Positions 26,101 to 49,726 of a stretch of DNA of 64,000 nucleotides are shown here, in pieces. The stretch is taken from NCBI RefSeq assembly GCF_001194135.2, contig NC_068981.1, positions 160,671,571 to 160,735,570 of the forward strand, written 5' to 3'. The position numbers and the translations under genes were made by a program. The notes under the pieces are model-generated. The model did no database searches. It saw nothing but the letters and a program-made list of their open reading frames with translations, and had not been told where the DNA came from. This DNA comes from Octopus bimaculoides. Lineage: Eukaryota. Position 1 is the stretch's first letter. Each line of letters starts with the position of its first letter.

Positions 26101-29100
26101 TTAACGGTGTGGTGCCCAGGTTTAGAGTTAACCATATAAACTATTGCTTTTTGTGTAGTAAATTGTTAGTTTTTGGGAATGGAGCAAAGTAGTTAAAAAA
26201 CGAAACTCAGTAAACCATGTCAAATTGGCACTAATCCAACACTGAGGAACAACAGTTGGCATTTCCTTCTTAATAATGGCACAACTCTTAGTAACCTTTT
26301 TAGTGTTTCTGATCTGATTCTTTGATACTCTTAATATTAAAGCAAGTTATAAATATTCAACAACCTAGTCCTCAAATCATAGATGAAATTTGGAAGACAA
26401 AAGGATGAACACAACTCTATTTTTTTCTCTACATTACTATCTTTTAATGTATAGAAACATAACTATTATAAAATTAAAGAAGTGATTTTAAATTCTCAAT
26501 CGCAGAATAATGCTAATAATGTAGCCTGAACAGGATAAACTACCCCTATTTTGCAGAAAAAAGTGTAGGTGGCTAGCTGTGGACACGAACTCACATCCCC
26601 GTGTTATAAATCAGCTCACTTATTTTAACCTTTTGTCTTTTTCAGTTATGCCAAGCAATAATTCTGTTAACTGGACACAATGGACTGGTACAATCAGCTG
26701 CATTTTCAGCCACAACAAAATGGATAGTAAGTTGCATCTCTCTGCATATATATTTTATTTTTGATGCTTAGCCCCTGGTCAGTTCTGACTGATTAGTTCT
26801 ATGATCAAAAGTATACCAACAGAACTACCTCATCCTCTCAAACTTGCATTTTTAGGTCTATATTATCCCTTCATATTCAAGAAAGCAGAGTTATTTGAGA
26901 GAGATTTAATTGATATTTCAAGTAAGTGTCCACATTCATTTGTCTCTCTCTCTGTCTCTTGCACATACTATTAATAATGATTGTACTTTGACTTATTAGT
27001 ATGCTTGTTTACATGGAGAAGCAATGGCCCATAGGATCGCGGTTTCGATTCCAAGACCGGGCGTTGTGAGTGTTTATTGAGTGAAAACACCTAAAGCTCC
27101 ACGAGGCTCCGGCACGGGGATGGTGGCGAACCCTGCTGTACTCTTTCACCACAACTTTCTCTCACTCTTACTTCCTGTTTCTGTTGTGCCTGTAATTCAA
27201 AGGGTCAGCCTTGTCACACTGTGTCACGCTGAATATTCCTGAGAACTGCGTTAAGAGTACACGTGTCTGTGGAGTGCTCAGCCACTTGCACGTTAATTTC
27301 ACGAGCAGGCTGTTCCGTTGATCGGATCAACTGGAACCCTTGACGTAAGCGATGCAGTGCCAACACACACATGCTTGTTAACACAATTCAGATAAAAATA
27401 CTTCAATGCTACTTTGGCATGTGATCCACACTTTAAAGGGAGACTACTTTAGCTTACTTTTCAATTTCTAAAACCCTTAAGCGTTTGGTTAAAGATTTTT
27501 ACAATGGTGACCATGTCGTCATTGTGGTGGAGAAATGATGAAGAGATGAGAAAAAAACGATGAAATTTTGCCAACTTCTTGCTGCAAAGCTCATGGCTGT
27601 CAAACTTGTGTCATCTATGTGCTTATTTTAATTGTAATATTGTTTATTCTTGGCTTATTATTATTATTTACTAAGACATAAATGAAACATGGTTTTATTA
27701 TTATTAAAATAGTAAGAATTTTGAAAAATACATTTACAATGCTAAGTATGTACAAAAGAATTTTTAAAAATTTGAAAAGCAATTTGATAATAAAGATGAA
27801 ACATAAATTTGAATAATTTTATTCATGAATTGAGCATGCATCTGCTAGAAATGCAAGAGCATCTTAAAGGTTTTTAGAAATTTAAAACTAAACTAAAAAG
27901 TAGCCTAAAGTAATCACCCTTTAAATTGTAGATCACACACCAAAGTAGCCCCAGTACTTCTTTGTTTTAAAATACACACAGTTTATTATTGTTACATCAG
28001 TCACAACTAATCATTAACTGACTGATAATCTACTGATTGGAAAATTAGTAAATTTTATCCCCCCTTTTTGTCACTGTACTGTCCAGACAAAGTGATTTAT
28101 CTATCACTGTTAATAGTTTCCATGAAAGGTACAGTTCACTGTGTACAGAACAGAAGTGACTACTGTTTTATTATCTCCTATTCTTGAATTCTTCCTTTGG
28201 CTTGAATAAGGATCAACTAAGCTACTCCAATGTATTTTTACTTGAATCAATACATGGGGATGAAACTTCTATGTAGTGAGAAATTATGACAATATCTATT
28301 GTGTGCATGTAAATATATATTATCATGTACTGAAATCATTCTCATATTCTGTGCATAACAGATTGTTTATGAGGTTAGAGTGCATCTTATTTGTATATTC
28401 GGCCTGTATAGAACTAAGGAGGCTTGACTAATATCATGATAGTTTGGTTCTTAATCATGTGATTTCATTAACTTTGGTTTTAATCTACAACCATTTCTGT
28501 AGAAGATTAACTTGGTATTTTTTTTAATACTTCTTTGAATCATTAGACCGCAGCCATACTGGAGCACTGCCTTGAAGAATTTTTTATTGAATGAATTGAC
28601 CCCAGTACTTCTTCTATTGGTCTCTTTTGCTGAAGTTCTAAGGCCTACAATTGTAGGCCTCATTAAAAATGTTAATAAATTAATTTATATCCATTAAATC
28701 TCTCCATTTTCTTACTTAATGATATTTGATATGTATATTATACCTATTTTTATACTGAAGGTATATTTCTCAACAATATGATATATTAAACCAGTGTGAC
28801 TTGGATGAAACCATCTCCATAAGAGGTTTATGTCCTCAAAGTGACACCAACACCAGTTGTCAAGAATTGGTGGGTGACAAAGACACACATATGTCTATAT
28901 ATATATATATAATACAAAGAATATATATACATGTATACACACATATATGTACATACTTACATCTACATGTGTATATACATGCATATCAGGGTACAGGACG
29001 TTAGAACAATAAACCACAGACAACGGAACAAACACATAGGAAAACGGAAAGCCCCTTGGAATATCCCTTCATCAGCTGTCTCTATTCTATCCAGACGTTT

Positions 29101-32100
29101 CGAATATATATATATATATTGTGATCTATNNNNNNNNNNNNNNNNNNNNNNNNNNNNNNNNNNNNNNNNNNNNNNNNNNNNNNNNNNNNNNNNNNNNNNN
29201 NNNNNNNNNNNNNNNNNNNNNNNNNNNNNNNNNNNNNNNNNNNNNNNNNNNNNNNNNNNNNNNNNNNNNNNNNNNNNNNNNNNNNNNNNNNNNNNNNNNN
29301 NNNNNNNNNNNNNNNNNNNNNNNNNNNNNNNNNNNNNNNNNNNNNNNNNNNNNNNNNNNNNNNNNNNNNNNNNNNNNNNNNNNNNNNNNNNNNNNNNNNN
29401 NNNNNNNNNNNNNNNNNNNNNNNNNNNNNNNNNNNNNNNNNNNNNNNNNNNNNNNNNNNNNNNNNNNNATTTTTTCGGTAATTTTAAATGTCTTGCCCGC
29501 TTACACTTTGGTATTCCGCTGAATTTCGTTTTGAGAACAATTTAGGTCTTAGTAGACACAAGATGTGATCTATTTCTAGCACATTAAATGTCCACGTTAT
29601 ATATAAAACTATATATATATATATATATATACACAGGACCGCTTGACTGGCCTTTGTACCGGTGGCACGTAAAAGCACCCACTACACTCTCGGAGTGGTT
29701 GGTGTTAGGAAGGGCATCCAGCCGTAGAAACTCTGCCAAATAAGATTGGAGCCTGGTGTAGCCATCTGGTTCACCAGTCCTCAGTCAAATCGTCCAACCC
29801 ATGCTAGCATGGAAAGCGGACGTTAAACGATGATGATGATACACACACATACACATATATCCTTTACTCATTTCAGTCGTTAGACTGTGGCCATGCTAGG
29901 GTACCACCTTGAGGAATTTATTTTTTTCTTTAAGCCTGGTATTTATTCTACTGGTCTCTTTTGCTGAAGTTGTGGGGATGAAACACACCAACACCAGTTG
30001 TCAAGCAGTGGTGGTGGGCAAACATAGACACAAATATATATATATCAAATATTATTAAGTAAGGAAGTGGAGATTTAATGGATATAAATGAATTTATTAA
30101 CATTTTTAATAAGGGCTACAATTGTTTCAATTCACTCTCAATACAAATTACAAAATAAGTTTGCATTTTGAATATTTAGAGTAAAATATCTTCAGGGCCA
30201 ATAACATTAAGGCAACTACATGTTGATTAATTGATATTCTTCAACAGACTAAGTAGATGAAAATACGTTTAATTTGTGTGTGTGTGTTAATAATTTTATG
30301 TATATAATATATATATTTTTATAGTTAAATAAAATTATTAATACACACAAAAAAATTAAACGTATTTTCATCTACTTAGTCTGTTGGAGAATCTCAATTG
30401 ATCAACATGTAGTTTCCTTAATGTCTATTGGCCCTGAAGATATTTTACTCTAAATATTCAAAATGCAAACTTATTTTATTCTATAGGTTTGTAATTTGTA
30501 TTGAGTGTGAATTGAAACAATTGTAGGCCTTATTAAAAATGTTAATAAATTCATTTATACCCATTAAATCTCTCCATTTTCTTACTTAATGATATTTGAT
30601 ATTTATGATATACCAATTTTTATATTGAAGATATATTTCTCAACAATATGACTTGTCACATCCAAGTCACAACAAGTGTGACTTGGATGAAACCATCTCT
30701 ATAAGAGGTTTATGTATCCTCGAAGTGACTATATATATATATATATACAATGGGCTTCTTTCACTTTCGGTCTCACAAGGCTTTGGTTGGCTTAAGGCTA
30801 TAGTAGAAGACACTTGTCCAAGGTGCCACGCAGTGGGATTGAGTCTGGAACCATATGGTTAGGAAGCAAGCTTCTTACCACACAGCCATGCCTGCACTTA
30901 CAGGCCTTTGTTTGTACACACATAATTGTTTTATCTTGTTTTCTTAAGAATTACAAAAGATGTAAATGATTAAATTCCTTATAATTTTTTGCTTTGTTAA
31001 ATCTGCATTAAAGGCAACTGGATCTTGGGATTTTTGCATTCGAATTTGGAATTTGGATGAAGAATCTTCTAAAGAGAATGCATCTAATATGAACCAATTG
31101 TCAAAATCTGATTTGAAGAAAAAGAAGAATCTGAAAGCTGATGTATTCCCATTAAAACCCAAACCAAATCATCTTCTTCAGAAGCACAAAGGAAATGTTC
31201 ATACTGTGGCATTCTCTGGAAATGATGTACTGGTAAACATATTCAATGTAAAATCACTCAAACAGTATAAAAGTAGATTGAAATAAGAACAATTTATACA
31301 TTTCTGATGACAATAGTACAAATAAAATACAGAAGTAATTTCTTTTCTTTACTGTCAGAGCATGGTGGAGAAAAGGAAGTATAAAACCATGACTTGGGGT
31401 TTGTCCTTATACTAGTAACATCTTTGAATGCTTCCAACAGAATGGACTCCAGTAAAAAGGCACCCAGGGGCTAGAGTTAATCCATTAGCATTCAGATTAC
31501 TCTGTCAAATGTAATGCCTTTTATTCACATTGTTTAAAACTAATCAGGCATTATCTCCTAGCTTCAAGATTTTGATGATATAATTATTTTTAAAATGACA
31601 TTGTAGGGTAGGTGTGAGAGGCCAGATCTGGCCGATTTGAACATAAAACAGGTGGAATATTTTAGCCAGGTGTGGCTGGTTGAAATACTAAATGGTTAAA
31701 TCTGAAAATACTTTAGGTCTGTTCTCCTCAGTCCTCCCAATTAAACCACACAACACTTTGGTTAACTAAGTGGGATCAACTCTAGAAAAAACTACGTTAG
31801 TGAAGCAAACTTCTTATCTAGGAATTCTAATTTTGGCACAAGGCCAGCAATTTTAAGGGAAGGGGCGTGCTTATTACATCAACCCCAGTACTTGACTGTT
31901 ACTTTATTGTATTGACTTTGAAAGAATGAAAGGCAAAGTTGACCTTGGCAGAAAATCTAAAGAGCCAGAAGAAATGCTACTAAGCTTTTTGTCTGTGGTC
32001 ACAATTTTGCTGGCTCGTTGCCATAACTTGGTATGTATAATAAATGAATGACAATAACCTTGATGACAAATTGTAATTTTTTCCTTAATAAATCTATGCT

Positions 32101-33948
32101 TAGTATGGGTTATATATTTCCTAAGAAAGTTGATTTCTTCCTCATATTGGATAAACTGTCTCCATCATATATCCTCCGAACATACTTTTAGATTAAGTAA
32201 ATTAACCAATTATGCTTGTCTGGATCAGTGGTTCTCAACTGGGATCCATATAAGATTTTGTTGTTAAAAATTATGTGCAATAAATTGGTTATACTTCTAC
32301 AATACACAAAATATTTTAAGAATTTTTAAAATTACAATTCCTAATATTTAATTATAAAAATATAATTGGACTTTTTAAACCACTGAATAGCTATGGAGGT
32401 CCAGTTAATTAAAATATGAATCAGAGGCATCCATAGGCAAAAAAATTATTGAGAACCACTGGTCTAGATTATCAGGCTTGTAGTATGGACACACAGTCTT
32501 AGTTTAAATTCTCTGTGATTCTGATTCACTTTGCTTACAAAATATATACAGGTTGTTTAACATAAGGTCAGGCTCTGATGAAGCAAAGACATTCCACTTT
32601 TTTTTTCAGATATACTGTGTCTGGGACTACACTATCTAATGTATCTTTTTTTGTAAAGATATTTGAGAGATTTAACTGTTATTTTAGCAGGTCTAGAGAC
32701 TTCTTTGTTGTTTAACCTTAAGGTGGCCTTGATCAAGCTATGACTATCTTTTTCGTTTTTCAGGAATAACATAAATGTACCCAGGACAATATTATTCAAT
32801 TTGTCCTTTTTAAAGAGGTCTCAATTTTAGGAAAATTTGGTATGGTTAATTAGAGCTCCCTTCATTATCTCAAATATTTACCAGTGAAAAAACAAAAAGC
32901 ACACTAAATATAATGCCCCCGTGACAATTCAATGTCCTTAATTCTCTCATTTCTCATTGTGAAGGCAAGTGGTTCCTGGGACAAAACAGTATGCTTGTGG
33001 GATCCTCTGAAGGGTCAGCTACTACACTGTCTTCAAGGACATGATGGCTGGGTACAAGTTGTAGCATTTTCTCATGATAATCTCTATGTGGCAAGTGCAT
33101 GTGAAGATGACACCATACGAATTTGGGTTGTTGAAAATGGGAAATGCTGCAAGGTTCTTGCGGTGAGTCCATTAACCAGTTTACAGCAGTGCACCATCAC
33201 ACATTTTTCTTTTTTTCTATGCTATCCGTAAATAGAACAGGTCAGTAATGGATTTCAAACTCATCCGTTTCTGAAACTATTAAACATTTTCTGATCTGAC
33301 TAAATCTCACTATTTTTTGGTATCTGTAACTTTCCATTCATTATAATGGATGATACATCATTTTCACAAATCTTGTTGGGTAAATAGTTATTGTTTATCC
33401 ATGTTGGTATGAGTTAGACAAAACTTATTGATGCAGATTTTCTACAGCTGCTCCTGTCACTAATCCTCACTATGGTTGTGTGGCTACAAAGTTCACTTTG
33501 CAGCCACATTGTTCCATGCTCAAACCCTCTGTATGACACCTTACGAGTTTTGTCTTTAACCAACCAATGCCTTGAGTGGAACAGGTAAAACCCTTTGGCC
33601 TTTTGTGTATAGATAGTTCGGGTAAATCCCAGCTGTCTCTTCTGTGAAGCATATCTGCTTATTCCTTACATGTCTATATAACATGTAAATCTTTGATATT
33701 TACATAATTCCAGGTGGTAAACATGACAATTTCCTAAATTCACCTTCCATCAAGAAGCTTCAATCTTTTCTCTGTAAAATTTATTGATGTGGAGATATGA
33801 TTAAATAACACACAAGTATATTAACATATTCAATTGCTCTTTTTTGCAGGCTAAAACAGAAACAGTACAGCTGTGTGTTTTCACTCCACATGGTACTCTT
33901 TTAACATCAGGAACTAACAGTGCAACAGGTTCCTTCCACACACATTAA
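15993..33948 (+). CDS. WDR38: WD repeat-containing protein 38-like, complete CDS, 8 exons, 332 aa
   Basis: Exons 15993-16058, 19480-19600, 22008-22124, 24382-24479, 26646-26726, 31014-31232, 32965-33162, 33850-33948 (999 nt, phases consistent). [41 protein letters not shown]...[25 protein letters not shown]...[14 protein letters not shown]...[15 protein letters not shown]...[12 protein letters not shown]...[13 protein letters not shown]. Repeat-by-repeat similarity to remembered human WDR38. In-frame TGA just upstream of the ATG; AATAAA 33954-33959. Confidence 0.85.
16667..18003. mobile_element. Helentron-associated (HINE-like) non-autonomous elements, two pieces flanking a CR1 insertion
   Basis: AACTAGAAAAGCACTCAGAGAGCACAGACCTCCGCCAA start (16667), second CGCAGACCTCCG at 17624, and a CATAACCTCC..TTGGCGAAGGTAAT end at about 18000 (subterminal inverted CCTCCGCCAA/TTGGCGAAGG). 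Confidence 0.55.
17225..17623 (-). mobile_element. CR1-clade LINE 3' fragment
   Basis: [34 protein letters not shown]...[18 protein letters not shown], a typical CR1 ORF2 end. Confidence 0.8.
18167..18398 (-). mobile_element. tRNA-derived SINE (family B), central domain resembling Nin/Deu-type
   Basis: Minus strand: GGCAGCAAGCTGGCAGAATCGTTAGCA (A box)...GAGTTCAAATTCC (B box)...GCCTTTCATCCTTTTGGGCTCGATTAAATAAGTACCAGT...(ATT)n. Other copies at about 3990-4165, 12160-12310, 20120-20330, 31825-32023, 43360-43570, 43685-43815, 57760-57978 (-) and 54410-54632 (+). Confidence 0.8.
18557..18720. repeat. (TG)n microsatellite spanning an N gap
   Basis: Direct reading. Other SSRs: (AAT)n about 12311-12345, (TAC)n about 20057-20120, (AT)n 36558-36600, (ATT)n about 40012-40048, (CT)n about 49696-49770. 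Confidence 0.95.
18895..19410 (-). mobile_element. RLE-type (R4/Dong/NeSL-like) non-LTR retrotransposon 3' fragment
   Basis: [12 protein letters not shown]...[18 protein letters not shown]...[10 protein letters not shown]: PD-(D/E)xK restriction-like endonuclease. Confidence 0.8.
20455..20828 (-). mobile_element. tRNA-derived SINE (family C) with internal (CA/TA)n
   Basis: Minus head AGGCGCAGGAGTAGCTGTGTGGTAAG...GGTTCAGTCCCACTGC..CCTTGGGCAAGTGTCTTCTACTATAGC. Partial copies at 16128-16425, 28530-28640, 29860-30035, 30730-30900, 60905-61005 and 58372-58510 (+). Confidence 0.8.
22290..22900 (+). mobile_element. Heavily decayed Ty3/Gypsy remnant (protease and integrase pieces)
   Basis: LVDTG protease-like motif (about 22484-22500) and [20 protein letters not shown] (compare HPQANGMVERFHRQLKAAL). 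Confidence 0.55.
25718..26125. mobile_element. hAT-like MITE with dense GTTAAC/TTAAC subterminal motifs
   Basis: Ends GAGCACCATTAA / TTAACGG..GGTGCCCA; many TTAAC/GTTAA copies in both halves. Confidence 0.55.
27010..27365 (+). mobile_element. tRNA-derived SINE (family D)
   Basis: GATCGCGGTTTCGATTCC B-box-like head; shares CAAAGGGTCAGCCTTGTCACA...GTGTCTGTGGAGTGCTCAGCCA with 12955-13270; related head at 4180-4320. Confidence 0.7.
28990..29105 (-). mobile_element. Penelope-like terminal fragment
   Basis: Minus strand TCGAAACGTC...CAGCTGATGAAGGG motif pair typical of Penelope ends; abuts an N gap. Confidence 0.5.
29636..29840 (+). mobile_element. Family A copy
   Basis: Core plus GATGATGAT tail. 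Confidence 0.85.
30042..30602. repeat. About 560-bp near-perfect palindrome (foldback)
   Basis: Arms 30042-30300 and 30329-30602 are reverse complements, with scattered mismatches and one indel of about 12 nt. Confidence 0.95.
32226..32461. mobile_element. hAT (Charlie-like) MITE
   Basis: TIR CAGTGGTTCTCAA / TTGAGAACCACTG; 8-bp TSD GTCTGGAT / GTCTAGAT. Confidence 0.9.
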
Positions 33949-34477: not shown

Positions 34478-36551
34478 TTACTTCTTCTTGGCCACACCAA
34501 CAGTCCTACCACGACGACCAGTTGTTTTAGTGTGCTGACCTCGGACACGCAAACTAAAAACAGAAAAGAAAAGAAAAGTTTGTTACATAATCAAGACCAC
34601 ATTGTGATGTTCCAACAAGTAACTTCAAAACATCTGCATGAGAATTCTGACATTTCATAAATAAAAAGAAATCCACACTAGTCATTATTATTGCAGTATT
34701 AAGTTCATGTACTTCTTTTTGTGATGCCTGACCACTCAATATAGTTCAAACCATGCTAGATGTATGTCTCTAGAGAGGAAACACCCAAAACCTTGTTAAT
34801 CAAACAAACCAGGGGCATGAGATTCTATTCTTGCTTTCAGAACAAAATGATTTTTTTTCACCCCATTTAAGCAATGATTCTAAATTCCCCAATATAAAAA
34901 AAATGGATACAACTACCATGGCAAGCAGACTAACAATATTTAACAGATTTCTTCAAAATATCTGATTAAGTTCACTTATAGATAAGTCATCCATGTCAGC
35001 TAAACATATGCTATTTAGCAGTTGTATGCTGTCAACTTAATGTGACAGTCCCCTGAAGGGAATAATACTACACTACTGCATAAATCTGAGAGATTTAGAA
35101 ATGTATTATTTCATCATCATCATTTAACGTCCGCTTTCCATGCTAGCATGGGTTGGACGATTTGACTGGGGACTGACGAACCAGATGGCTACACTAGACT
35201 CCAATCTGATCTGGCAGAGTTTCTACAGCNNNNNNNNNNGGGACTGACGAACCAGATGGCTACACTAGACTCCAATCTGATCTGGCAGAGTTTCTACAGC
35301 TAGATGCCCTTCCTAACGCCAACCACTCTGAGAGTGTAGTGGGTGTTTTTTATGTGCCACCAGCACGAGGGCCAGCCCGGCAGTACTGGCAACGGCCACG
35401 CTCAAATGGTGTTTTTTTTTATGTGCCACATGCACAGGAGTCAGTCCAATGTTTTGTTCACATGCCACCGGCACAAGTGCCAGTAAGGCAAAGCTGAAAA
35501 TGATCACGCTGCTCTGGCAGTGATCCCGCTCGGATGGTGCTGCTAGCGCTCCACTAGCATGGGTGCCAGTCACTTTTACAGAACCAGACTCCCCCAACAC
35601 CCAATCTTAGCAACTACTTAGCATATCAGCAACATGCTATCTTAAAACATTTTCAATTAAAAATATACTGACCCCCAGAAATGACGTAGACCACGATGTG
35701 CTCTGATCTTTTTTAACCTCTCCAAATCTTCACGCAACTTGTTGTCAAGAGCATTTGCCATAATTTGGCTGTATTTTCCATCTTTGATGTCCTTCTGTCT
35801 GTTAAGGAACCAGTCTGGAATTTTGTACTGACGAGGGTTTGACATGACTGTTAAAACTCTATCAACCTGAAAAAAAAAAAAAAAAAAAAAAAAAAAACAG
35901 CATTATTAACACAACTCTGAAATAGAATAGTTGACATCAAAGTATAATTATGGAAAGGGCAGTATCCCCTCATGAACAGTTGTCAAATTCAATTTAGATG
36001 CAGGCAACTACACTGTAATGAAGTCAAATTACAAATTATCAAAAACTAAATCTTTGGTTCATGAATAACAGGATACAAAATGAAATTTACATTTTAAATT
36101 ATGAATTATATATACAAGGTTCCTTGGTATAAGCTTTCTTTATCTCTCCTTTTTAGCTTGCCTAAGATTTGTACTGCTTTCACCCCACTCATCAATCATA
36201 TAAATGTTTATTGTTGAAAACCTGGTCACATGGAGGCTCTGAATGTCATCAACATTTAACATCCATGTTCCGATGGATCTTTTCACCCACCAGCACTATT
36301 GAGGTTGGTTTATGTCAGTGGATAAGGGGAAGGAGACACAATGCATGTTCGTGTAGGGGAGCTACATAGCCACTCCAATTTTCTGGAAAAGGGTGAGAAG
36401 GGGAAAACATAAAATTCTTCATAGGAAAATCACAAAGAAAAAACTGGAATTCTTACCTCCTCTTCTGTCATTTCACCAGCACGTTTATTTAAATCAATAT
36501 TGGCCTTTTTACAAACTACATTGGCAAATCGTCGTCCAATTCCCTAAACAA

Positions 36552-36602
<51 letters not shown>

Positions 36603-37006
36603 CATAACAAAATTTATTAGAATTGAACGAACATTAAGCATCAAATCCAAAAGCGTTTTAGAGAGATGAAAGCAGCAAAAATTAAGTGAAGTGGCTGCAA
36701 ATTTCAAGCCTTACAAAACTCACCTTAATGGCAGTAATAGCAAACATCGACTTCCTACGACCGTCGATGTTCGTATTCATAATACGCAGAATATGCTGAA
36801 ACTTCTCTGGGATTACGAGCGACTGAAAGTAAAAAGAAAACGTGTAAATTTAATAATAGAGACGGTTGGATAAGTAGTATCCAATTCTTTAGTTTGGTAA
36901 ATTCGTAGCTTAAATCATTCCTTCTCATGTGGGATTTTAGAGACGCCGTTTTGGATTGCTTGTGTATGCGATTTATTACAAGCGTTCGCATGAATAGTTT
37001 AACCAT
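34478..37006 (-). CDS. RPS18: 40S ribosomal protein S18 (uS13), complete CDS, 5 exons, 152 aa
   Basis: Exons (minus) 37006-37004 (ATG only), 36822-36724, 36543-36457, 35866-35673, 34553-34478 = 459 nt: [152 protein letters not shown]. Minus-strand AATAAA at 34463-34458. Confidence 0.98.
35110..35580 (-). mobile_element. Family A copy in RPS18 intron 4 (spans a 10-N gap)
   Basis: Reverse-complement core and tandem subunits. Confidence 0.85.
36209..36378 (-). ncRNA. Candidate box H/ACA snoRNA in RPS18 intron 3 (sense to host)
   Basis: GC-richer block; 5' hairpin closed by AGTGG/CCACT, then H-box-like ACATAA (36315-36310); 3' hairpin TGAAAA/TTTTCA with internal pocket and CATGGA/TCCATG upper stem; ACA (36214-36212) 3 nt from the putative end. 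Confidence 0.45.
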
Positions 37007-38284
37007 GTAACGGAAGACTATATTAACAAATCATATCTTGATTAAAAACAATATGCAACACAAGACAAAATGTACGTGGGGAGCATTTTCATAACTGATA
37101 AATTGTAAAAAAAAAAGAAGATAGTAACCCATTTATATTGATCTATCAGAGGAGGGTGCTTCACACGACCTAAACAAAATTAATCGCGCTATTGGATTTT
37201 GTTCAATTGAAGATTACAGTCAATCAATAAAGGTGTTACAACGATTCCCTTTTTATTTCCCATACGAGGGAAATTCAGATGCTATTTTTAACAGATCGAG
37301 CGGTCCCCATAACCTCGAACTTCTTATTAATATGGCTTTCGTATACAAACAGAAACCATCATACAATTTTTTCTAAAGAATAAACAATACTTCAGATGTT
37401 TTAAAGAATGAAATATTTAACAAGGGCAGTACTGTTTGATCCAATTTAGTTATTCCACCCGACTATTCATGTATGAACGACGAAACGAAACTCTGCATGT
37501 TGCTAAAAAGGGACCACGACCTCCGAATTTTATGTGGTTTAAACGAAGTATTGTACATATTTAATTTTACAATTTATATTGGATAATATTAATATGGCAG
37601 GTAAAAGACCTGCTGGAAACTCAAACTACACTGGACTAATCAAAGGTTTTCTTTTAAAAAAGCACTAGAGAATGGTGCGTGGCAGTAGAATTACTTTCTC
37701 AGTTTTAATCTCTGACAGATTGATGTTGAATTTGTACAAGCTTTGTGGGTGGAAGCTTGAAATAACAGGATATTAGTAACTTGAAAACCAGAAATTTCTA
37801 AATCAAACAATAATTGCACCACGTGAAGAAATTGTGCTCCAAATACTTTACAAATTAATCTAATGCAATATTTCAGCTGTACGAAAACACCAGTTTTCTT
37901 TTAGTCAAAGAAATAAATTTTAGAGATTATAATTTCGATAAAAGGAAATATAAGCAATATACAATACAGTGAAGTAGATATATTTATCCAAAAATGGTAC
38001 ATTTTCGTTTGAAAATAAATTTATGGTAGACACATGATGGCTGGGACACAAATGTAAGGCGGTAATATTTTAAGTAATACTCAGTAATAAATAAACAATT
38101 GTTACCATAATATTGAATCTTGCACAAAATGGATATCAAATAGTAAATACGATGTTTTTCTTAAAGATGAATTCACTAAATTATTAAGATTATAAAGGAT
38201 AAAAGCAGAGATATATCGTAACACCAACTTACCATGGTTGCAGTTTACCGGAAAAGGAAGTTTGATTGTTCACGTGACTTAAAG
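37007..38284. promoter_or_regulatory. Putative bidirectional promoter region between RPS18 and VPS52
   Basis: 1278 bp between divergent start codons; visibly CpG-rich compared with gene bodies; ETS-like CCGGAA (38248-38253) and GGAAGT (38256-38261), E-box TCACGTGAC (38270-38278); pyrimidine stretch TCTTCC just before the RPS18 ATG. Confidence 0.65.
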
Positions 38285-40009
38285 ATGGATACCACAGCAG
38301 AAGACACGAATGGAGAAGAGGTGGGACAATAATTCTGTTTTGAAATATATGACTGCATTGCTTTATTGTGTTAAGTAGGATAAATTATATGTCCGTTATC
38401 GACATCTGTAAATTCTTGCAACTGAAATGTCTAAACACGTAGTCGTACGTAATGTGAATGTACATATAATGTTTTAATAATGATAATAATAAAAGAGTCT
38501 GTCAATTTGTTTGTCTTGCAATGTTAACTGGCGATAGCATTGGATGTAAATACTTATAAGTCATTTTAATTTTATTAATTGAAAATGATGCAATCAAAAA
38601 ATCCCTAAATTGTTTATGTATTGTTATCGTTTCAGTTAAAGACATACACTTTCATTTAATTGAAAGCGTGTTATACAAATGCTATGTTCTGAACTATAGT
38701 TTAAGATATTAAAATCAAGCGTTCGGGTATCTCATCACTTTTTTTTTATAGAGTAGAGTTTGTTTTAAGGAAAAATTAGTTGCTTTTTCTCATTGGCCCA
38801 GAAAGCCCTGTTTTTAAAAGCAAGGGGTTGGCTCTTTGTTTACGCAACAAACAGTTCTGATTGTATTATTAACAACACTGGTACGTTAAAAAAAACGTCT
38901 TTCACTTCCGATCCAAGACAAAATCGTTACCGCAGCTCGCGTTATCCATTACAACCACTTTCCACATAGCTTTCATTATAAAATGTGAAAAAGAAATAAT
39001 TGCATATAGAGCAGTGGTTCCTCACCTGGAAGTACCTGCAAACCCATGGGGGGGGGGGGTGAGGAGATGGCATTTCAGGATTGTATGACAAAGAGGGAGA
39101 GTATATACTTTATTAAAATTGCTTTTCAGAATAAAATTATTTGCTGAATCTTCAAAGTAACTTTATTTTATTGAACACTCACCGAAATTTATTATTATTA
39201 TTTTTTTTATATGTTTATAGAGAAAAATACATTTAATTCTTTAGAGATTACGACTGAGAGCCATGTCCTTGTTCCATTCGCCAACGGCATACTTATGTGA
39301 ATCTGGTTTTAGTTCTCGTTTCCTAATTAAACAAAACCTAGGAATTGTTTGATCGACAGCCAGACTTACGGGTCGTAAACAGGAAAAAAATTCCATGTTT
39401 TGATTAAAGTCACTAAATAAGTCATTGAATTTAATGTTAATTTAATATGGGATTGATGTAGTTAGCAAGATTCTTGACATGAACTCGTGCGTTGGAACAG
39501 ATTTTGTTGTATCTTGCGAGGGTCATTATGTCCAGAATAAACACACGCACTGTTTCTATTTCACTTCTTGTATTATTATTATTATTGAGTGAAAGAACAG
39601 TGCATACCATCAAAGTGACATTGGGGTGAAATATACCAGTATACCCATATTGATAAGGATACACCAGGCACATGCATCACAACTATATGTGCGCGACATA
39701 GTGATCTCATATCAAAATAAACAGCGCATGACCTTACAGGTGGGGGCAATTAGAATTTTCTTCAGGTTGAGAAGCCCATCCTACTCAAAAGATCTCTGAA
39801 TAAGGGTTGTTCAAGGATGTTGAACAAAACACCCATATTTCCAAAGGTGAATTATCCAAACCTCAAAAAATTCCTCTCAACACATGGCTATGATACTCTC
39901 CCACTACTTCTGCTTGTGATCAGAGATGCACATATCGTCAGCCACTAAGGGACTTGCTCAGCTGGTTAAGATCAAGCAACTGACAAGCAAATCTGTGGTA
40001 TTGAGCACA

Positions 40010-40046
<37 letters not shown>

Positions 40047-43000
40047 TACTTTTAATCTGCATATTTGTTACAATCACTCACCAAGACACACCCAGCATCC
40101 TAGGGTGAGTGAAGGATAAGAAATGTTGCAGTATGACTGAAAGCTTGGGCAGGGCAGGTGGCAGGGGCAGTAGTGAAATATCTTTACAACACATACATTT
40201 AAATTGATAGGGTTTTTCTAAGGATAAGGGCAGTAATTGTCAGCACAATCTTTTAGATTTCTCTGAGACATGGTTCTCCTGGGATATTATCTAGACGTTT
40301 CTGACACCTCTTTCTTATACCAAGGGTTCCCACAATAACAGGAACAGTTCTTGCTTTAAGAGGCCACATCTTTTGTAGTTCAATTTCCATGTCCTCATAT
40401 TTACTTAATTTGTCCAATTCCTATACAGATATATTTTTATCAGTGGGAACACTTACATCTATTAGTCTACAAGTATTTTCTTCTCTGTCCTTAATGACTA
40501 TGTCTGGTTGATTAATTCTGATCAAGCAGACCTATGATCAAAGGCACTCTAGCTATGATCATCATGTTTTAGTTGTATCCTATTTTAACACCTTAAAAAA
40601 AAGTGGTTTTAAAATACTTTTATTATTGAATATGTTGTTAACAATTGTTCATTAACACTATTTCTTCTGTTTATCGTTCATTAGCCTAGTGTGTTTGTAT
40701 GTACCATTCCTTAGCATCACCACTACCATATAGTATATCCTGCAACAAATACCAAGAATAGGCTGTTGTTCAATATTCTCATCTTATCTGCATGAATCCA
40801 TGTGGAGAAATATGTCTGGCTCTAGTGAACACACTTTTGGTTGTCCTATTTCTCCTGTAAAGGAACTGAGCATCATTTGTATTTTGAGACATAAAAATAG
40901 AAAGTTTGCTGGAATGGATTGTAAACAAAATAGAATTTTATTTACAATCTTTCCAGCAAGCCTTCTAACAATGTTTATTTTAAAATTTGCTCTTAAGTTT
41001 TTCCCCAGAACTGTCACCATCTAGTAGCACCATGTATATTTTCTTGCTTATCTGTGATTTGATCTACATTTATGCATGCTGATACATAGTGGAGCTTGTA
41101 AACTACAAAGTTATAGCTACAATCCTAAGTAGGTTAATGATTTCGATGAATAAAAGAAAAATTTGAAGATGAAGTAGAAATATATGTAGATCAGATTTGA
41201 GAGAACGTTAGATTTCGTAAGTTAGATGATGAATGTTTGGAATATATAGGCTGAATTTGTTGCGAAGCTGGAGAAGAAAAAAAAACCTGATGCTGAATTG
41301 ATAATGATTTTCATAAAAATAACACTGATGCAATTGAGTACAAAATAAATCTACTGTCTTTAACGAAGCTTTTCTAAGATATATTTTTATTCCATAGGGT
41401 CTTGGAAATTTTGATGTGGTCCCCAATCTTGGAGTTTTAGACCTTACTTCAGAAGATTTCCTCCTGGATGAAGTTGATTGTAAGTCTCTCTCTCTATATT
41501 GTTGTGTATTTATTTTCAAAGATTAATATATTATATCTTTGGATTTTGAAATTTTTGAAATTTTTAATTGATTATTTTCAAAACATGCATGCTGATGATG
41601 AACATTGCATTCATTTTTCCCTAGAAATTAATAATAAAGAAGTAAGAAGTTTTTAAAGTTATATAATTTTAGCCAATTGAAAGCCTCCATTGCTGACATA
41701 TTTTAAGTTGCAACTGTTATCTTGGAGATGAGCACAAACAAAGATGAAACCCTTATGTGGTTTCTCAACCTGCAAAAAAAAAATGTTGCAGCCAAATCTT
41801 CCTTAAACTACAAAATAACATCTGAAAAAACAAAATAAGCTGGAATTGGTTTGAATGCTATTGATCACAGATATACTTCATCAAAAATTGTATTTTTTTA
41901 GCCATTCATAATTAGAGTACCAATCCATCATAATATCGACCTAAATTCATACTGACTCTAAATATGGTTTTTATATGTAATCATGAACACATTGTATGTA
42001 TTAATGACAAACATATTCAGCATATTATATATATTATATATAAAATCATATGAATGATATTTAAAACTTATGCTACTCTTTTCTGTTTTACTTTTTGTAT
42101 AATTTGTGTTTTCAATTTTAATGAATTTTTATTCAAATATTTTAATATTTGTTACTTTCTAGTTCATATACAACAAAATCTGGAAGATGATATTGTAAAA
42201 GAAGCTTTGAAAACTGTGAGTAAATTCTGAAATTAATTTAAGAACCCTTCCATATTTCTTATTGGTGTTTCTATGTTGGACATCCCTAATCAGCTTTGTT
42301 TGAATACAACTTTTGTACAGAGATAAGTCAGGGCCATGTAGGGAAGAAAAATTCTAATTAATAATACTTATGTGGTGAATTTTAATTTGATCATGACAAA
42401 GTATGGATTTTGGTCTTATTAGACTGCCACTGCAAAGTGTAACTTACTTCATCCTCATCAAGATTAAACATTAGAGAATCATTATATTATGGAGATGTAT
42501 TTGCATGACAAGTGTTTTGATATGGGAATCGTGTGCTGAAAGTAAAATGATTGCAGTGTGGAAGACACATATTAACCATTCGGAAACATACAAAGACTGT
42601 TAACTTCACTTAAACCTTTATTGTGTGTGTGTGTAATAATAATAATAATAATCATCATCATCATTGTTTAACGTCCACTCTTCACACTGGCATGGGTTGG
42701 ACAATTTGACATGGAGCTGACTAGCAGGGAACTGTCTGGACTCCAGCTGTCTGTTCTGGCATGGTGTCCATGGCTGGATGCCTTTCCTAATGCCAACCAC
42801 GAGTATGCTGGGTGCTTTTCACATGCCACTGGCATTGGTACATTTATGCAGCACTGGCATGGGTACTTTTTATGTGGCACTGGCATTTGAAAGGACAAGC
42901 TTGAATTAGTGGAAGATGGCAATTTTACTTAGCTTGATGTGTCTTATCAAGTATAGCAAATTGCCTCTCCTGGTCCCTTGTCAATTCCTCGGTGATGCCC

Positions 43001-46000
43001 AGCGTCCAAAGATCCTTTCTTACCACTTCGTTCCACATCTTCCTGGGTCTACCCCTTCCACAGGTACCCTCCGCAATTAGAGTTCAGCACTTCTTTATGT
43101 AGCTGCACTCATCCATATGCATCACATGACTAAACCAGCATAGTCTTCCCTCTTGGTGTAATATGGTGTCAAAAATTATTGTCACTCCAAACTGCGAACT
43201 GGTCACTGTGACAGTGTAACATTATCAGTGACCAGGTTGCTGTTTAGAGTGAAGACAGTTTTGAAACCATATTACAAACAGTAAATGTTTAAGTGATGTT
43301 AACAGTTTTTATGTGTTTCTGAACGACCAGTATGTGTCTTCTATGCTGAATCAATATATTCATTTCAAATTTTGGCACAAGGCCAACAATTTCAGGGGAG
43401 GGGATATTACATTGACCCTAGTGCTCAACTGGTACTTATTTTATTGACCCCCGAAAGGATGAAAGGTAAAGTCAACCTTGGGCAGAATTTAAACTCGGAA
43501 TGTAGAGACAGATGAAATACCACTACACATTTTGCCTGGCACAGTAATGATTCTACCTTTCACTGCCTTGCTGATGTACTGTAATGTACATGAGTAAGCA
43601 TCAAAAACAATAATGTTTGAGAGAAATTATGATAATATGCATAAAAATAACAGTCAGGTTAGTTCTATCATTTAAAATTTTGATTTCAAATTTTGGCACA
43701 AGGCCAGCAATTTTGGGGAGGGGGTAAGTTGATTACATTGATTTCAGTACTCTGCTGGTATTTATTTTATTGACCCTGAAAGGATGAAAGGCAAAGTTGA
43801 CCTTGTCAGAATTTGCTATCATTTTTAACATAGTGAGGAAAAGAATTTTAATTAAAATTACTTACAAGATGAGAAGAAAGTGTTAAATCAACGATGAAGG
43901 TATCTGACTGAATGCTGAGGAACACTCTGAAAGTTCTACATGCTGAGGATACATATATTAATCAGTATGTTAATTTTAGTCAAATTTTAGTAATACTCTT
44001 CTTGTTACCTGTAGCTACCTCATTGATTGTCTACTATTTTAGATTCTCATTTTAAACACAGGAGAGAGTATATTGTAGAAGGTTTGATTGCTTAAATTTC
44101 TATTGATTTTGAAGTAGTCTGCATAAACATCAAGCAATGTATTTTGTATATAGTTGAGATAAATGTCATCTAGTGGAGAATGGTGATTGAATGGTGTTCA
44201 TTGCCTCTTGTACTTGATGGTTGCTATAATGGTAATGAAAACAATGAGGAAAGTACCACAAACATTGAAAACTATAGATGATGTTTCATTAAACTACTGT
44301 ATATAATACAATACTGTACACAATATCTCATACACATTGCTGATCAATGTGAGAAGGATGTAAGTGGCTGAATGACATATTAATTTGTTTTAATGTTTTA
44401 GTCAAGTTGGAAGCCAGTGACCTTATGACCCTTTACAGACCTTCCTCCCTCCCACCATACAGGTGGAAGAGAGGAGGGTCTCCTCAGATTGGAGACATGC
44501 TTATAACAGAGTGGACTTTTTTAAAGGTACTCAAGATGCCAGGTGGTGGTGTTGAACCAGATGACAGCTTAGGTCTATCCCTTAAGCAGGTCACAGTGAG
44601 ATTTGAACTCAGAAGACAAAGATGAGAGAGATATCACAACATTCCCTACTATGTATATATATATATAGCTGTCAACACACTGCCTAGTAGGTATCCCATG
44701 TATTAGCACTGATTTTGATTATTTAACTTACAGAGGGAAGAGCAGTTTTCATGACCTTTTTCAGTGCTTTCAAGACTGAAGGAATTTATTATCCTTGTGG
44801 ATTAATGCTTGCAACAGAGTGGTCTTCATTAGAGGTGCCCAAGGGCTAGGTGATGGTAGATGATGGATCCAGTCTACCAACCAAGAAAAATGAACATTTC
44901 ATTTATTGAGCTTCAACCAAATGTTAATAGCAAGGCCTTCTTTGATATGAGTCTATGATGGAGGACACCTGCCCATAGTTCTATGCAGAGATTGAACCCA
45001 AAACCACATAACTCTGAAGTGAATTTCTTAACCACACAGCCATATCTGTCCTTATGGATGTCTGCATCCCCCCCCCCCCAAAAAAAAACCCAGGCATCTT
45101 AGTACCAGTAGATTTACTCCTTTGTTTCAGTTATTAATTGTGCATAAAAACAGTATTTTATTTTTATCTTATAGGGTGTTGATCTCAGACAATATTCCAA
45201 GCAAATAGAGAAAGAATTATTAGAGGTTGAAAATGCTTCTATACAGGGATGTATCCTTTTCATGATATTGTATGTTTTATTTACATGATTTTCATTCTAA
45301 ACTGTTTTGTCAATGTTTAGACATAATAATGATGTTTGCTTGATATAATGATTTGGATATGTTGGCTGTATATTTTTTCTTACATTTTTACTTCCATTTA
45401 GATTAGGCAGCTTGGAAAAAAAATTAAACATTTGCTTTAATGGATAAAATAAATTTTTTGGCTCTACATCTAGGTGTCTATTGTATTACCAGACATTTCA
45501 GAATGGCACCTGTTGTTAAACCAAAGCAAGAAGTTATACATGCTCTGGTTAAGTGCACAATACAATGATTGTAGTAAAATTTGATTTCAAGAGCATAGGA
45601 TTTGTATCTTATCAAAATGTAAACGGTTCCTCTGTCATGAATTGAACTGAAGCTGCTTAAATGAAACCTAAAATCCCAACTCTTTGAGAAGCTGATACAT
45701 TTATGGTTAGATTTCTTTCTGTTGCCAGCCATGAAATGAAAGAAAGAAGAGGATATTTTGGTAATTTGGACACAACTTAGTCACTCTATTCACTTAACTA
45801 ACGATAACTATCTTGAAAAGAGAAAGGAGTGTCTATGTATAGTTAGGTTGACATTGAGATGAAAATCGACATTTATATTTGCTTGTGCATTTCAGCAATC
45901 TGCCAGTTTCAAAATGCATAAAGCATAAAGTTTTATACCATTTGAAATATGTAAAATATACTTATCAGACACCGTTTTATGGTGTAAGTTCTTTAATATT

Positions 46001-49000
46001 TATTATTTTTTTAAATAAAAATAGATATCAAATGAATTTTATTCTTCATTTAATATTATTGAAGGTATTTATTATTTTCTGAGAACTTTAGAGTCTTGAG
46101 TCTACCAAATGGCAAGTTGTGGTATTTATAATCCTCTAAGCAAATTAGTGAAGTTTGATAGATTAAAATAGTTCTAATGATAATTCAAAACCATGTTGCA
46201 GAATCAATTTTTTTGTGACGTTTGCCCTTAACTGCATTTAAAGATATTAAAGAGAGCCAAAATATTGCCAGTCTTCACAAACAGATAGCAGCATGTGATA
46301 CCATCCTAGAGGTAATTTCTATAATTTCCACACATATATTATTGATGTTTATTTCTTCACTTTTTTTATTTCTTGTACTTTTGCCCACACTGTGTAGTTT
46401 TGTGGGGTAATGATAAATTTAGCCATGGGTGAATGGTACTCCTTTATTCCAATTGATATAGTATTCTTCAGTATTCGACAACACATGACATCACACTATA
46501 AATGCAACTAGTAGATGTTACTTATAGAGCCTGCATTGAGCAAATACATCGTCAGACAATCAAAACAGAAATAAAATCTGATTGTCTGATGATATGTTTA
46601 CTCTATGCTGGCCCTACAAGTTTCATCAAGTAATTGCTTATCTATAGTGTGCCATCTTGTGTTGTTGAATACTAAAACATATAAAAATTGGCATAAAGGA
46701 GTGTCACATTCTATCCATGCTCTTTTCTCTTGCATACAACAGGGTGTACAAATGTGCTTTTCACACAGCTATAAGAGTTTGAACTCTTATTTCTAGTAAT
46801 AATTCTGCTTCTAGCACCCACAGTCACAATCAGTGATGACTAAATTTTTCCTATATGGCTTTGTATAGTGGCTAGCTGCTGACATTAATTTTTAGTATAC
46901 ACATTGACATCTTGCCAAATCAGCCATAAATTTATATGGTAAATATATATATTGACAGAGGAATTTAGCTGTTCCATCAAAGCAATGGAGTCCTAATTAC
47001 TGGATGAAAATATAGTCCTGTGATGTATCTTTGCTCATGGGGCAGTTATCTATCCTGTAAATGTATATAAATGTGCTTTTCGTGCAGCTATAAGAGTTTT
47101 AACTCTTATTTCTAGCAATAACTGTACTTTTAGCACCCACAGTTACAATTAGTGTTGACTGAATTTTTCCTATATGGCTTTGTATTGTGGCTAGCTACTT
47201 ACATTAATTTATATATATATATATAGGCTTGGTGATCAAGAGAGAAACAGAAAAGTTTCGGTGGTAGATGGGTTGTTTGGTGTCTGTTTTCCATATCTGA
47301 AAGACTGTTTGATTATTTATATTTACAACACAGAAAAGAGAGAAGACAAAACAGAGAAAAATAATTTCACTGGTTTATGAATCTTTAACTATTTCAATTG
47401 CAGAGGATGGAACAAATGTTAAATGGTTTCCAGGCTGATTTAAGTAGTATCAGTAATGAAATTCAAACATTACAAGAACAGTCGATTGCCATGAACATCA
47501 AACTCAAGAATAGACAGGTTAGTACCAATATTAGATTTCGATTTCCTTTTATTCATTTATAGTTATCAGTAACAACCGCAGCAATCTGAATTCCTTGGGT
47601 GCTGATTGGTGAATCAAAGTTTTGGCAGTTTTGCCTTGTCACCAGTGCAGTTCTGTCCTTCTACCAAACACATGTTATGCTGAATGACTCAATGACCTAT
47701 TTGTAAATAGATGTGATGTGTGGGTGCAGTCTGTTACAAGAAGCTGTGCAACACTGAAAACAAGTGTTTCGTTAATTTGAAGTATTGAGTAAACATTGTC
47801 CAATCAATGAAATGTGCAGTAGATTTGTGTGTTTCTTTCTAAGTGTGGGATGTCTCTCAGACATTTGCTGCTGTATAAGCTGGGGTAAGATTCTACATAT
47901 CTTACCTGCTATGAGGAGACATATTACAGAAGTAGGAAACATACTAAATGATCAGCTAATACATTTCCTATTTTGACTTTAGTGAAACCTGAAGTTAGTA
48001 AATTTATTAAAGAATTATTCAAGTATAATGAGTGTTGGATGTTATAAAATAAAATATTTACACTTGGTTTACAGCCTCATTTTCCTTTATAAATCTGAGG
48101 CCTTGTATTATATGTATAATAATTTGATAATGCAATGTTGTAACGTGGTTTTAATCATATTCATATATTTAGCATCATGATCTTCATTTTACATATGCTT
48201 TTCTATAATGGTATGGGTTGGATGGGTCATTAGGGTTCAGGTAAGTTTTTATTTTTATCATTGTTTGTTAAGTTTCATACTTGGTATGGTTTCTACTGCT
48301 GGATGGCCTTCTTATTACCAACTACTTTACTGAGTGAACTGGATGCATTTTATTATGGCACCAACACTAGAAAGGTGTCTTACCCAAGCAAAAGTAAAGA
48401 ATCTGTTCTCTCTACATTGTCTCCATTTATTCATTCCTTTCTTTCCCACACAACTTGGTGTGTAGAAAGGGGAATTTTTTTGCTAAATCACTGGTACTGT
48501 TGTGCATTACTATCTCTTATCACATAGGTAGCATGCTGTGAGAAAGGAGTTACAGAAGTGATAGGGTGGTAGAAGAGTAATAAATGAGAGACAGTGAGAG
48601 TATGATAGAGAGAATGATGGAGAGAGTAATGAAGGTCATAGTGAAACGAGAGAGAGAGAGAAAAGTATAAGATGAAGAGGAAGTGATAGGAACCTTTCTG
48701 AAGTTCTGTATGTAAATTCTTCATGCTACCTCAAACAATAATCCATTAAACATAACATTAATGTTTCAGGCTGTGCGGGGAGAACTGAGTCAGTTTGTTG
48801 ACGAAATGGTAATTCCTGAGAGTATGGTGTCGTAAGTAACTTACATACAATACATACATTTTACTCAAAGGTCAGTTTTTCAATCAAGAGTTCACGAACT
48901 AATCAATCTTGATCACTGTCATAGAATCTCTTGCAAGTAATCAATTCTTATAAGATGTAGGAAGGTGATTTCTGTACCTTTGCATCTAAGATTATTCAGT

Positions 49001-49726
49001 TTCACTATTCTTACAGTGTCTTTTTGTTTTTTTTAACCTTTCAACATAATTGAAATCTGAATGTTATTTTTCTGTGAACAGACATATCGTGGATACCCCA
49101 GTGACTGAGCGAGAATTTATGGAACAACTGAATGAATTGAATCATAAAATAAATTTTGTCAAGGAACAGTCGTTTAAAGAGGCTCGCTCTTGCCAGGATG
49201 TCCGTGATATTCTTGAAAAACTCAAGACTAAGGTATATTACTAAACTAATTAAAAGCATCTGACATAATTATTCATTTACATGTTGTGAATCATTGTTAT
49301 CGTTTTAAAACTCGCAAGTTTCTATTTTATTAACTATAACATATCTTACATTGATACATTGAAGAAGGATATAGTTGATTGAATCAACCTTTGTAGCAGG
49401 TATTTATTTATTGGGTATCAGAACAAGAAAAAGCAAATTGTGTGATATTATTTGAACTCCAAATACTATAAGACAGTATTAAATATTATATTAGTGGCAT
49501 TCCTCTGTGTCTGTCTCTGAATCACCTATTTTTAACTGTGACAAATAATAACTGTATTTATATTTCAACTATAACCATGTTGGGGGTGGGGTAATGTTTT
49601 GGAGGTACTCAATTTATCAGATTGTTTACCGGAGTTATGTCCCTTCCAAAGAATTATTCCTCCATCACTTCGAATTTAAATGCAACTAATGCAGCCTCTC
49701 TCTTTCTTTCTCTCTCTCTCTTTCTT

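Follow-up and report, generated by a model that had tools for sequence, protein, structure and literature searches.

The window examined here, a 64,000-nucleotide stretch of the Octopus bimaculoides genome (NC_068981.1, positions 160,671,571 to 160,735,570 of the forward strand), contains the genes RPS18 and VPS52 in a head-to-head arrangement. RPS18 is encoded on the minus strand and ends with its stop at 34478; VPS52, encoded on the plus strand, has its ATG at 38285. This divergent orientation, proposed in an initial annotation of the window, is confirmed by spliced translation, gene models and tblastn. The distance of 1278 bp between the two ATGs given in that annotation must be corrected, as the start codons are separated by only 49 bp (38236-38284). 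Together with a survey of the locus in other animals, the data make it probable that RPS18 and VPS52 are a genuine ancient divergent pair that originated on the bilaterian stem, shares a promoter region and has persisted through the scarcity of breakable DNA between its members. The pair would thus add one more well-documented divergent arrangement left intact since the bilaterian ancestor, through the reshuffling of coleoid genomes, while its exceptions (a tandem order in a scorpion, loss in amphioxus and other partners of RPS18) bear on the debated question of what keeps such pairs together. The anatomy of the locus is also corrected, in that the first coding exon of RPS18 is a single ATG beside the VPS52 start, and an N-terminal extension in VPS52 gene models is flagged.

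Anatomy of the RPS18 and VPS52 genes

The RPS18 coding sequence is made up of five exons that join in frame over 459 nt to encode 152 residues, with GT-AG boundaries at every intron:

38233-38256, minus strand: RPS18 exon 1 as predicted, with a 21-nt 5' untranslated region (5'UTR) and the ATG
38233-38235, minus strand: RPS18 coding exon 1, the ATG only, gtaagt donor (gene models, three Octopus assemblies)
36823-38232, minus strand: RPS18 intron 1, 1410 bp
36724-36822, minus strand: RPS18 coding exon 2, starting SLVIPEKF (spliced translation)
36457-36543, minus strand: RPS18 coding exon 3 (spliced translation)
35673-35866, minus strand: RPS18 coding exon 4 (GT-AG sites, in frame)
34554-35672, minus strand: RPS18 intron 4, 1119 bp (O. 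vulgaris 476 bp, O. sinensis 555 bp)
34478-34553, minus strand: RPS18 coding exon 5, AG acceptor, TAA stop at 34478-34480

At the protein level, the annotated Octopus RPS18 (P0001, PF00416 Ribosomal_S13) and, over residues 1-152, a solved uS13 chain (PDB 9eho chain TT) both match with 100% identity, and a ribosome structure with precisely the sequence encoded here already exists. Vertebrate 40S S18 chains (u21409, 265 PDB entries) match with E=1e-88. The gene is intact and is not a processed pseudogene. Placement of an intron directly after the RPS18 ATG is common to sponge, cnidarians and bilaterians, and a first coding exon consisting of the ATG alone is also found in the sponge, two cnidarians, the scorpion and the gastropod.

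The initial annotation had placed the RPS18 ATG at 37004-37006, and on that reading the 1278 bp of CpG-rich DNA between it and VPS52 would be an intergenic promoter. That codon is likewise followed by gt and preceded by CTTCCG, and it would encode the same protein. However, it is used by no gene model in the three Octopus assemblies and its donor (gttaaa) is weak, while the ATG at 38233-38235 has a gtaagt donor, a TCT motif and an Octopus-invariant block around it, and the CTTTTCCGG-ATG layout followed by gt that is found in three other phyla. A start at 37004-37006 is therefore very improbable, and what was described as the spacer (37007-38284) is nearly all RPS18 intron 1 (37007-38232). The O. 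vulgaris RPS18 model begins at the equivalent of 38233-38235, and in O. bimaculoides and O. sinensis this start is annotated alongside another isoform, whose ATG at 38106-38108 is followed by gtaaca. This second ATG-gt within intron 1 (tattATGgtaaca) is kept in all three Octopus species and its isoform encodes the identical protein. Read-through from the first ATG reaches a stop after 19 codons, and the most fitting interpretation of the isoform is a variant with an alternative donor after read-through of the first one. Two simple-sequence runs are also present in the gene, an A29 run (35870-35898) that abuts the exon 4 acceptor and a (TA)n run in intron 2 (36566-36602). An Rfam scan of the entire window gave zero matches, and no known snoRNA or other RNA in that scan explains the CpG-rich intron 1.

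Fifteen plus-strand exons account for residues 1-510 of the 722-residue Octopus VPS52 (P0121) at 83-100% identity, with the C-terminal 212 residues lying beyond the window end. Positions of exons 3-15 are approximate, having been read off tblastn alignments with P0121:

38285-38320, plus strand: VPS52 coding exon 1, phase 0, gtggga donor
41398-41479, plus strand: VPS52 coding exon 2, in-frame join to exon 1
42163-63862, plus strand: span of VPS52 coding exons 3-15, residues 57-510
~42165-42215, plus strand: VPS52 exon 3 (tblastn, as for all exons below)
~45175-45255, plus strand: VPS52 exon 4
~46246-46311, plus strand: VPS52 exon 5
~47398-47517, plus strand: VPS52 exon 6
~48746-48832, plus strand: VPS52 exon 7
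~49071-49235, plus strand: VPS52 exon 8
~49947-50048, plus strand: VPS52 exon 9
~52305-52439, plus strand: VPS52 exon 10
~53328-53399, plus strand: VPS52 exon 11
~54749-54880, plus strand: VPS52 exon 12
~56005-56166, plus strand: VPS52 exon 13
~62636-62761, plus strand: VPS52 exon 14
~63731-63862, plus strand: VPS52 exon 15

Query coverage is continuous, and the assembly gaps within VPS52 introns (50307-50629, 59345-59855 and 61037-61350) cost no exon. The annotated product matches Pfam PF04129 Vps52_CC and PF20655 Vps52_C and is 70-74% identical to other invertebrate VPS52 proteins.

Gene models disagree on the VPS52 start codon. In O. vulgaris the downstream ATG is used, while in O. bimaculoides and O. 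sinensis the annotated protein begins 51 nt before it, at an in-frame ATG (38234-38236) that overlaps the RPS18 ATG (38233-38235, minus strand) in a CCATGG palindrome. Were this the true VPS52 start, the two start codons would overlap and the mRNAs would be antisense across RPS18 exon 1. The annotated P0121 carries the upstream start, none of the three Octopus species has a stop in this frame, and with only 28 nt from the predicted start site of RPS18 to the ATG at 38285, a VPS52 transcription start upstream of 38234 is physically plausible. However, the extension (MVAVYRKRKFDCSRDLK) is a basic peptide of 17 residues, antisense to the RPS18 5'UTR and its terminal oligopyrimidine (TOP) tract, and is unlike every other VPS52 N-terminus; by our own estimate 17 in-frame open codons are expected by chance in ~15% of cases. 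It also lengthens the region preceding the LDLTS anchor to 42 residues, compared with 18-30 in eleven invertebrates and 25 in octopus when translation starts at 38285. The N-terminus of the shorter form (MDTT/AED) matches the MDTT of the chiton and the M-x-[ST]-x-A-[ED]-D of Pomacea, Pecten, Patella and Haliotis. An upstream start is thus unlikely, and the ATG at 38285, as chosen in the initial annotation, is favoured because these N-termini, the 18-30 residue range and the O. vulgaris model all agree with it. The 17-residue extension is probably an artefact of annotating the longest open reading frame.

Within VPS52 intron 1, two stretches (38946-39045 and 39444-39543) are 97-98% identical in the three Octopus species, compared with 85-91% around them, and may be candidates for an extra regulatory element or an alternative promoter. 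CCAAT-like and CTTCCG motifs occur near 38790-38915, just upstream of the first stretch.

The junction between the genes is free of assembly gaps. The window is 100% identical across 18.6 kb and 4.7 kb to the O. bimaculoides locus used for comparison (L001; GCA_001194135.2, CM046601.1), for which window position equals 48109 minus the L001 position. The window holds seven N runs; 35240-50306, which includes the junction, is free of gaps. One of these runs, and the repeat around it, lie within RPS18 intron 4:

35230-35239: assembly gap within RPS18 intron 4, inside a dispersed-repeat insertion
35018-35616: dispersed-repeat insertion of ~600 bp in RPS18 intron 4, absent from O. vulgaris and O. 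sinensis

An exact 61-bp duplication on both sides of the gap is a typical unresolved contig overlap, and the RPS18 exons that border the intron are joined in frame. The gap, at a distance of 3 kb from the junction and not between the genes, has no effect on the gene pair. In O. vulgaris and O. sinensis, whose assemblies are independent, the junction has the identical arrangement, with 98% identity over 320 bp compared with ~90% in the flanks of this block, and the suspicion that long-read assembly might break the junction can be set aside. From VPS52 exon 1 through the RPS18 ATG the three species are nearly invariant, with one synonymous change in VPS52 exon 1.

Distribution and age of the pair

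The neighbourhood of RPS18 was surveyed at 13 loci, with adjacency judged within +/-10 kb and tblastn controls run on L001-L013. Human RPS18 and VPS52 sequences served as initial probes only, and all conclusions are based on database proteins. Distances are between start codons:

O. bimaculoides, O. vulgaris, O. sinensis (Mollusca): head-to-head, 49 bp
Pomacea canaliculata (Mollusca, gastropod): head-to-head, 79 bp
Tubulanus polymorphus (Nemertea): head-to-head, ~104 bp, our own reading of the sequence
Anneissia japonica (Echinodermata, crinoid): head-to-head, 251 bp
Glandiceps talaboti (Hemichordata): head-to-head, 361 bp
Bos mutus (Vertebrata): head-to-head, in the order VPS52, RPS18, galactosyltransferase gene
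Centruroides vittatus (scorpion): adjacent and tandem, VPS52 starting 5.2 kb downstream of the RPS18 stop
Branchiostoma lanceolatum (amphioxus): not adjacent within 10 kb; a Band_7 gene is head-to-head with RPS18, 240 bp
Nematostella vectensis: not adjacent within 10 kb, tblastn check run
Clytia hemisphaerica: not adjacent within 10 kb; RPS18 head-to-head with a PMT gene, 358 bp
Dysidea avara (sponge): not adjacent within 10 kb; RPS18 head-to-head with clathrin light chain, 63 bp

Adjacency is thus retained in Mollusca, Nemertea, Echinodermata, Hemichordata and Vertebrata. For Tubulanus, the annotated VPS52 model (597 residues, ending at 7785) is without the N-terminal exons; tblastn extends the gene to 9638, and the likely first exon, MADVDSSAVAD followed by a gtaagt donor, has its ATG at 9894-9896 (all positions in L009). 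Weaker support comes from Physella, Candidula and Aplysia, where RPS18 and VPS52 are listed on scaffolds of equal length (288 kb, 319 kb and 1.6 Mb, respectively). Where RPS18 is without VPS52 as neighbour it is still head-to-head with another gene at short range (loci L004, L012, L014 and L015), including in Centruroides, where the partner is an Rpp14 gene at 681 bp.

Divergent adjacency shared by two spiralian and three deuterostome phyla upholds the proposal of the initial annotation that the pair predates the protostome-deuterostome split. The pair is linked in other spiralians (Pomacea, Tubulanus) and in non-chordate deuterostomes (Anneissia, Glandiceps), where a lack of linkage would have spoken for convergence; it is missing from amphioxus and the cnidarians. 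By parsimony the most likely history is a single origin on the bilaterian stem, later loss in amphioxus and one local inversion in the scorpion. Convergence in several lineages, or an assembly or annotation artefact, would fit the lack of the pair in amphioxus, cnidarians and sponge, and its lack of record in Ciona, C. elegans, insects and Daphnia in an earlier survey (PMC2871058). However, five phyla have this partner in this orientation, their start codons 49-361 bp apart, a specific neighbour is expected by chance at about 1 in 10^4 per lineage (our own estimate), and three independent Octopus assemblies agree with no gap near the junction. An independent origin is not credible because partner, orientation and spacing are shared in five phyla, and we regard either form of this explanation as hardly conceivable.

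In vertebrates the pair is already on record. Davila Lopez et al. 2010 (PMC2871058, Tables S4/S5) include VPS52-RPS18 among their potential bidirectional promoter pairs for eight vertebrates only (human, mouse, Xenopus and five teleosts), from a data set that also comprises Ciona, C. elegans, three insects, Daphnia, Nematostella, partial Trichoplax and Monosiga. These tables and the Bos locus bear out the adjacency and divergence of the human genes as given in the initial annotation. The octopus pair resembles the vertebrate pair at 6p21.3, in the extended major histocompatibility complex (MHC) class II region, in that the orthologues are head-to-head at a very short intergenic distance. It differs in its outer neighbours, with a WD40 gene convergent with RPS18 and no B3GALT4-like gene, in its AT-rich DNA (31% GC) in place of a GC-rich CpG island, and in having no MHC context. 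A second comparison is with the conserved ancestral microsyntenic pairs of Irimia 2012 (PMC3514665), such as HSPD1-HSPE1, which are likewise 5'-5' pairs less than 1 kb apart in distant metazoan phyla and for which a shared or bidirectional promoter was proposed as the explanation. HSPD1-HSPE1 is functionally linked and reaches unicellular holozoans and fungi, whereas RPS18 and VPS52 are not known to be functionally linked, and the pair was not found in the sampled cnidarians and sponge.

The main text of Irimia 2012 (PMC3514665) names neither RPS18 nor VPS52, the parts of the Schmidbaur 2022 supplements covered here list neither gene (blocks there need at least three genes), and literature searches on RPS18 with proto-MHC, VPS52 microsynteny and the RPS18 bidirectional promoter found nothing on deep conservation. 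Coleoid genomes are heavily rearranged, yet 275 ancestral microsyntenic blocks are retained in Euprymna (Schmidbaur 2022). Survival of a pair spaced by 49 bp is to be expected because coleoids keep ancestral microsyntenic blocks, and is no surprise in a reshuffled cephalopod genome. RPS18-VPS52 is a fairly ordinary new member of the conserved divergent pairs, a class already known, and its vertebrate counterpart was tabulated in 2010.

The predicted shared promoter and the persistence of the pair

The region between and around the two start codons contains the following features:

38236-38284, both strands: 49-bp spacer, putative bidirectional promoter core, invariant in the three Octopus species
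38248-38258, minus strand: putative TCT/5'TOP initiator followed by CCGG, TCCTTTTCCGG (motif search)
38270-38277, both strands: palindromic E-box TCACGTGA, at -14 to -21 relative to the predicted start of RPS18 and 7 nt short of the VPS52 ATG
36400-39000: CpG-undepleted domain, observed/expected ~0.6-1.5 at ~30% GC

The predicted initiator sequence TCCTTTTCCGG occurs once in the window and was matched in 0/100 shuffles. The TCT initiator consensus YYCTTTYY covers -2 to +6 (PMC4102762), and a match is found at 38251-38258, in the position expected from orthologues, where the RPS18 start site is predicted; TCCTTTTC, which fits the consensus, is 21 nt upstream of the RPS18 ATG. Transcription is predicted to start at C38256, inside the pyrimidine tract 38250-38260. 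The layout of CTTTTCCGG, a spacing of N13-21 and an ATG followed by gt is also present at the annotated RPS18 starts of Tubulanus, Anneissia and Glandiceps. The octopus promoter resembles the TCT/5'TOP core promoters of ribosomal-protein genes (Parry 2010; Wang 2014) in its TCT match, short predicted 5'UTR and first intron right after the ATG, and departs from them in that only 28 nt separate the predicted initiator from the ATG of a non-translation gene.

The E-box TCACGTGA likewise occurs once in the 64 kb. At least one match was present somewhere in the window in 29/100 shuffles, and therefore only the position of the element is notable. In the sponge Dysidea, the RPS18 promoter (L014 ~9940-10000) contains the same octamer, a second CACGTG and a pyrimidine tract (CTTCCTATTCTTTC); the arrangement of the octamer upstream of the tract resembles the octopus E-box and TOP layout, and the partner gene differs.

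Bidirectional pairs were reportedly defined by Adachi and Lieber in 2002 as divergent genes less than 1 kb apart, a definition also used by Davila Lopez 2010 and Irimia 2012, and the 49 bp between RPS18 and VPS52 are well within this distance. A shared compact bidirectional promoter is predicted and likely, and is made more plausible than in the initial annotation because the start codons are only 49 bp apart.

The description of the spacer as CpG-rich is correct in relative terms only, as CpG observed/expected over 37007-38284 is 0.91 (0.305 in the whole window; 500-bp windows have a median of 0.22), while GC is only 0.31. The domain of 36400-39000 is the sole strongly CpG-undepleted stretch of the 64 kb. 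Nine of the ten 500-bp windows with the highest observed/expected values are within ~36400-39000, values reach 1.5 at 36.5-37.0 kb, and GC is 0.28-0.34 across 36.5-39.0 kb. The domain covers RPS18 exons 2-3, intron 1, the promoter and the beginning of VPS52 intron 1. A CpG island in the sense of Gardiner-Garden & Frommer has GC >50% and observed/expected >0.6 over >200 bp. The octopus domain exceeds 0.6 over more than 200 bp, and at a GC of 0.31 is therefore not a CpG island by the vertebrate definition; a vertebrate-type island was rejected on this ground. From base composition we infer that 36.4-39.0 kb may be a promoter-proximal domain spared germline methylation, the AT-rich counterpart of an unmethylated island.

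These features suggest how the locus could operate. RPS18 would initiate at the TCT/5'TOP initiator, and a distance of 28 nt to the VPS52 ATG would make separate nucleosome-free regions impossible, so that both genes would share one nucleosome-free, germline-unmethylated promoter region (~36.4-39.0 kb). VPS52 would start either in this 28-nt interval or in the first exon or first intron of RPS18, the second case entailing an antisense 5' overlap; the 5' ends of the genes would abut or overlap, with the single palindromic E-box between them. The pair would persist mainly because the inter-gene DNA is too small to offer a harmless breakpoint and both genes are essential, and persistence would not reflect a mutual need of VPS52 and RPS18. 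A small breakable target is the general explanation given for conserved 5'-5' pairs by Irimia 2012 (PMC3514665). Here it is preferred because the genes are rearranged in the scorpion and RPS18 has other partners elsewhere.

The main rival to the small-target explanation is selection for co-regulation, in which one shared element (e.g. the E-box) would drive both genes and couple ribosome production to endosome-to-Golgi trafficking, with separation being harmful. The extremely short spacer with its single window-unique octamer, the retention of divergent orientation in five phyla and the tendency of conserved 5'-5' pairs toward co-expression (Irimia 2012, PMC3514665) are consistent with such selection. 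Against it, the E-box is not kept in the spacers of other phyla, the scorpion promoters are separated though the genes are still adjacent, and RPS18 pairs elsewhere with four unrelated partners. Selection for co-regulation is thus doubtful, though the strongest of the alternatives. No functional link is known between uS13 and the GARP (Golgi-associated retrograde protein) complex. The most specific form of the idea, in which the 5' ends overlap, VPS52 would initiate in RPS18 exon 1 or intron 1, and one USF/MiT-TFE-type E-box (TCACGTGA) would fire both genes as a bilaterian-wide unit coupling ribosome supply to endolysosomal trafficking, is improbable.

Several observations also weigh against the ancient shared-promoter interpretation that we prefer. 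The tandem arrangement in Centruroides, where the genes have stayed adjacent, requires a survivable break between the start sites, and RPS18 is head-to-head with unrelated genes (Band_7, Rpp14, PMT, clathrin light chain) elsewhere. The bidirectional promoter is weakened as an obligatory constraint by both facts, the scorpion tandem order and the head-to-head placement of RPS18 with other genes where VPS52 is absent. Amphioxus (Branchiostoma lanceolatum) is without the adjacency, and with three non-bilaterians sampled (Nematostella, Clytia, Dysidea) an older origin followed by losses is possible. The E-box was not found in the Pomacea, Tubulanus, Anneissia or Glandiceps spacers, and comparison of the intergenic sequences across phyla showed no common element beyond the RPS18 TCT-CCGG tract. 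The Octopus conservation profile could not delimit a promoter, with background identity among the three species already at 85-95%, and these species are too close for conservation to define functional elements. Finally, both transcription start sites, as well as any co-regulation of the genes, are predictions.

The same exceptions bear on the cause of persistence. The identity of the RPS18 partner appears not to be constrained, and the RPS18 promoter seems to be habitually bidirectional with changing partners. The exceptions therefore favour scarce breakable DNA between two essential genes over a need for a specific partner.

Other features of the window

Beyond RPS18 and VPS52, the window contains the following gene:

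24351-33948, plus strand: WD40-repeat gene, 332 residues, convergent with RPS18, with ~530 bp between the two stops

WDR46 is near RPS18 in mammals. A PDB search with the octopus WD40 neighbour returned generic WD40 matches only (WDR5, LIS1-like), with no link to WDR46. Assembly gaps at 24239-24279 and 29130-29468 are in or beside this gene.

The repeat inserted in RPS18 intron 4 (35018-35616) has at least ten further copies in the window. Copies of 76-90% identity are located at ~10-272, 1986-2200, 6949-7141, 13663-13918, 29647-29839, 53503-53695, 56231-56492 and 60619-60813. Short minus-strand frames at 17327-17614 and 18922-19212 resemble C-terminal parts of retrotransposon reverse-transcriptase proteins; beyond these, 1-24000 showed no convincing coding sequence. 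A (GT)n tract (18540-18740) flanks the gap at 18608-18667 on both sides.

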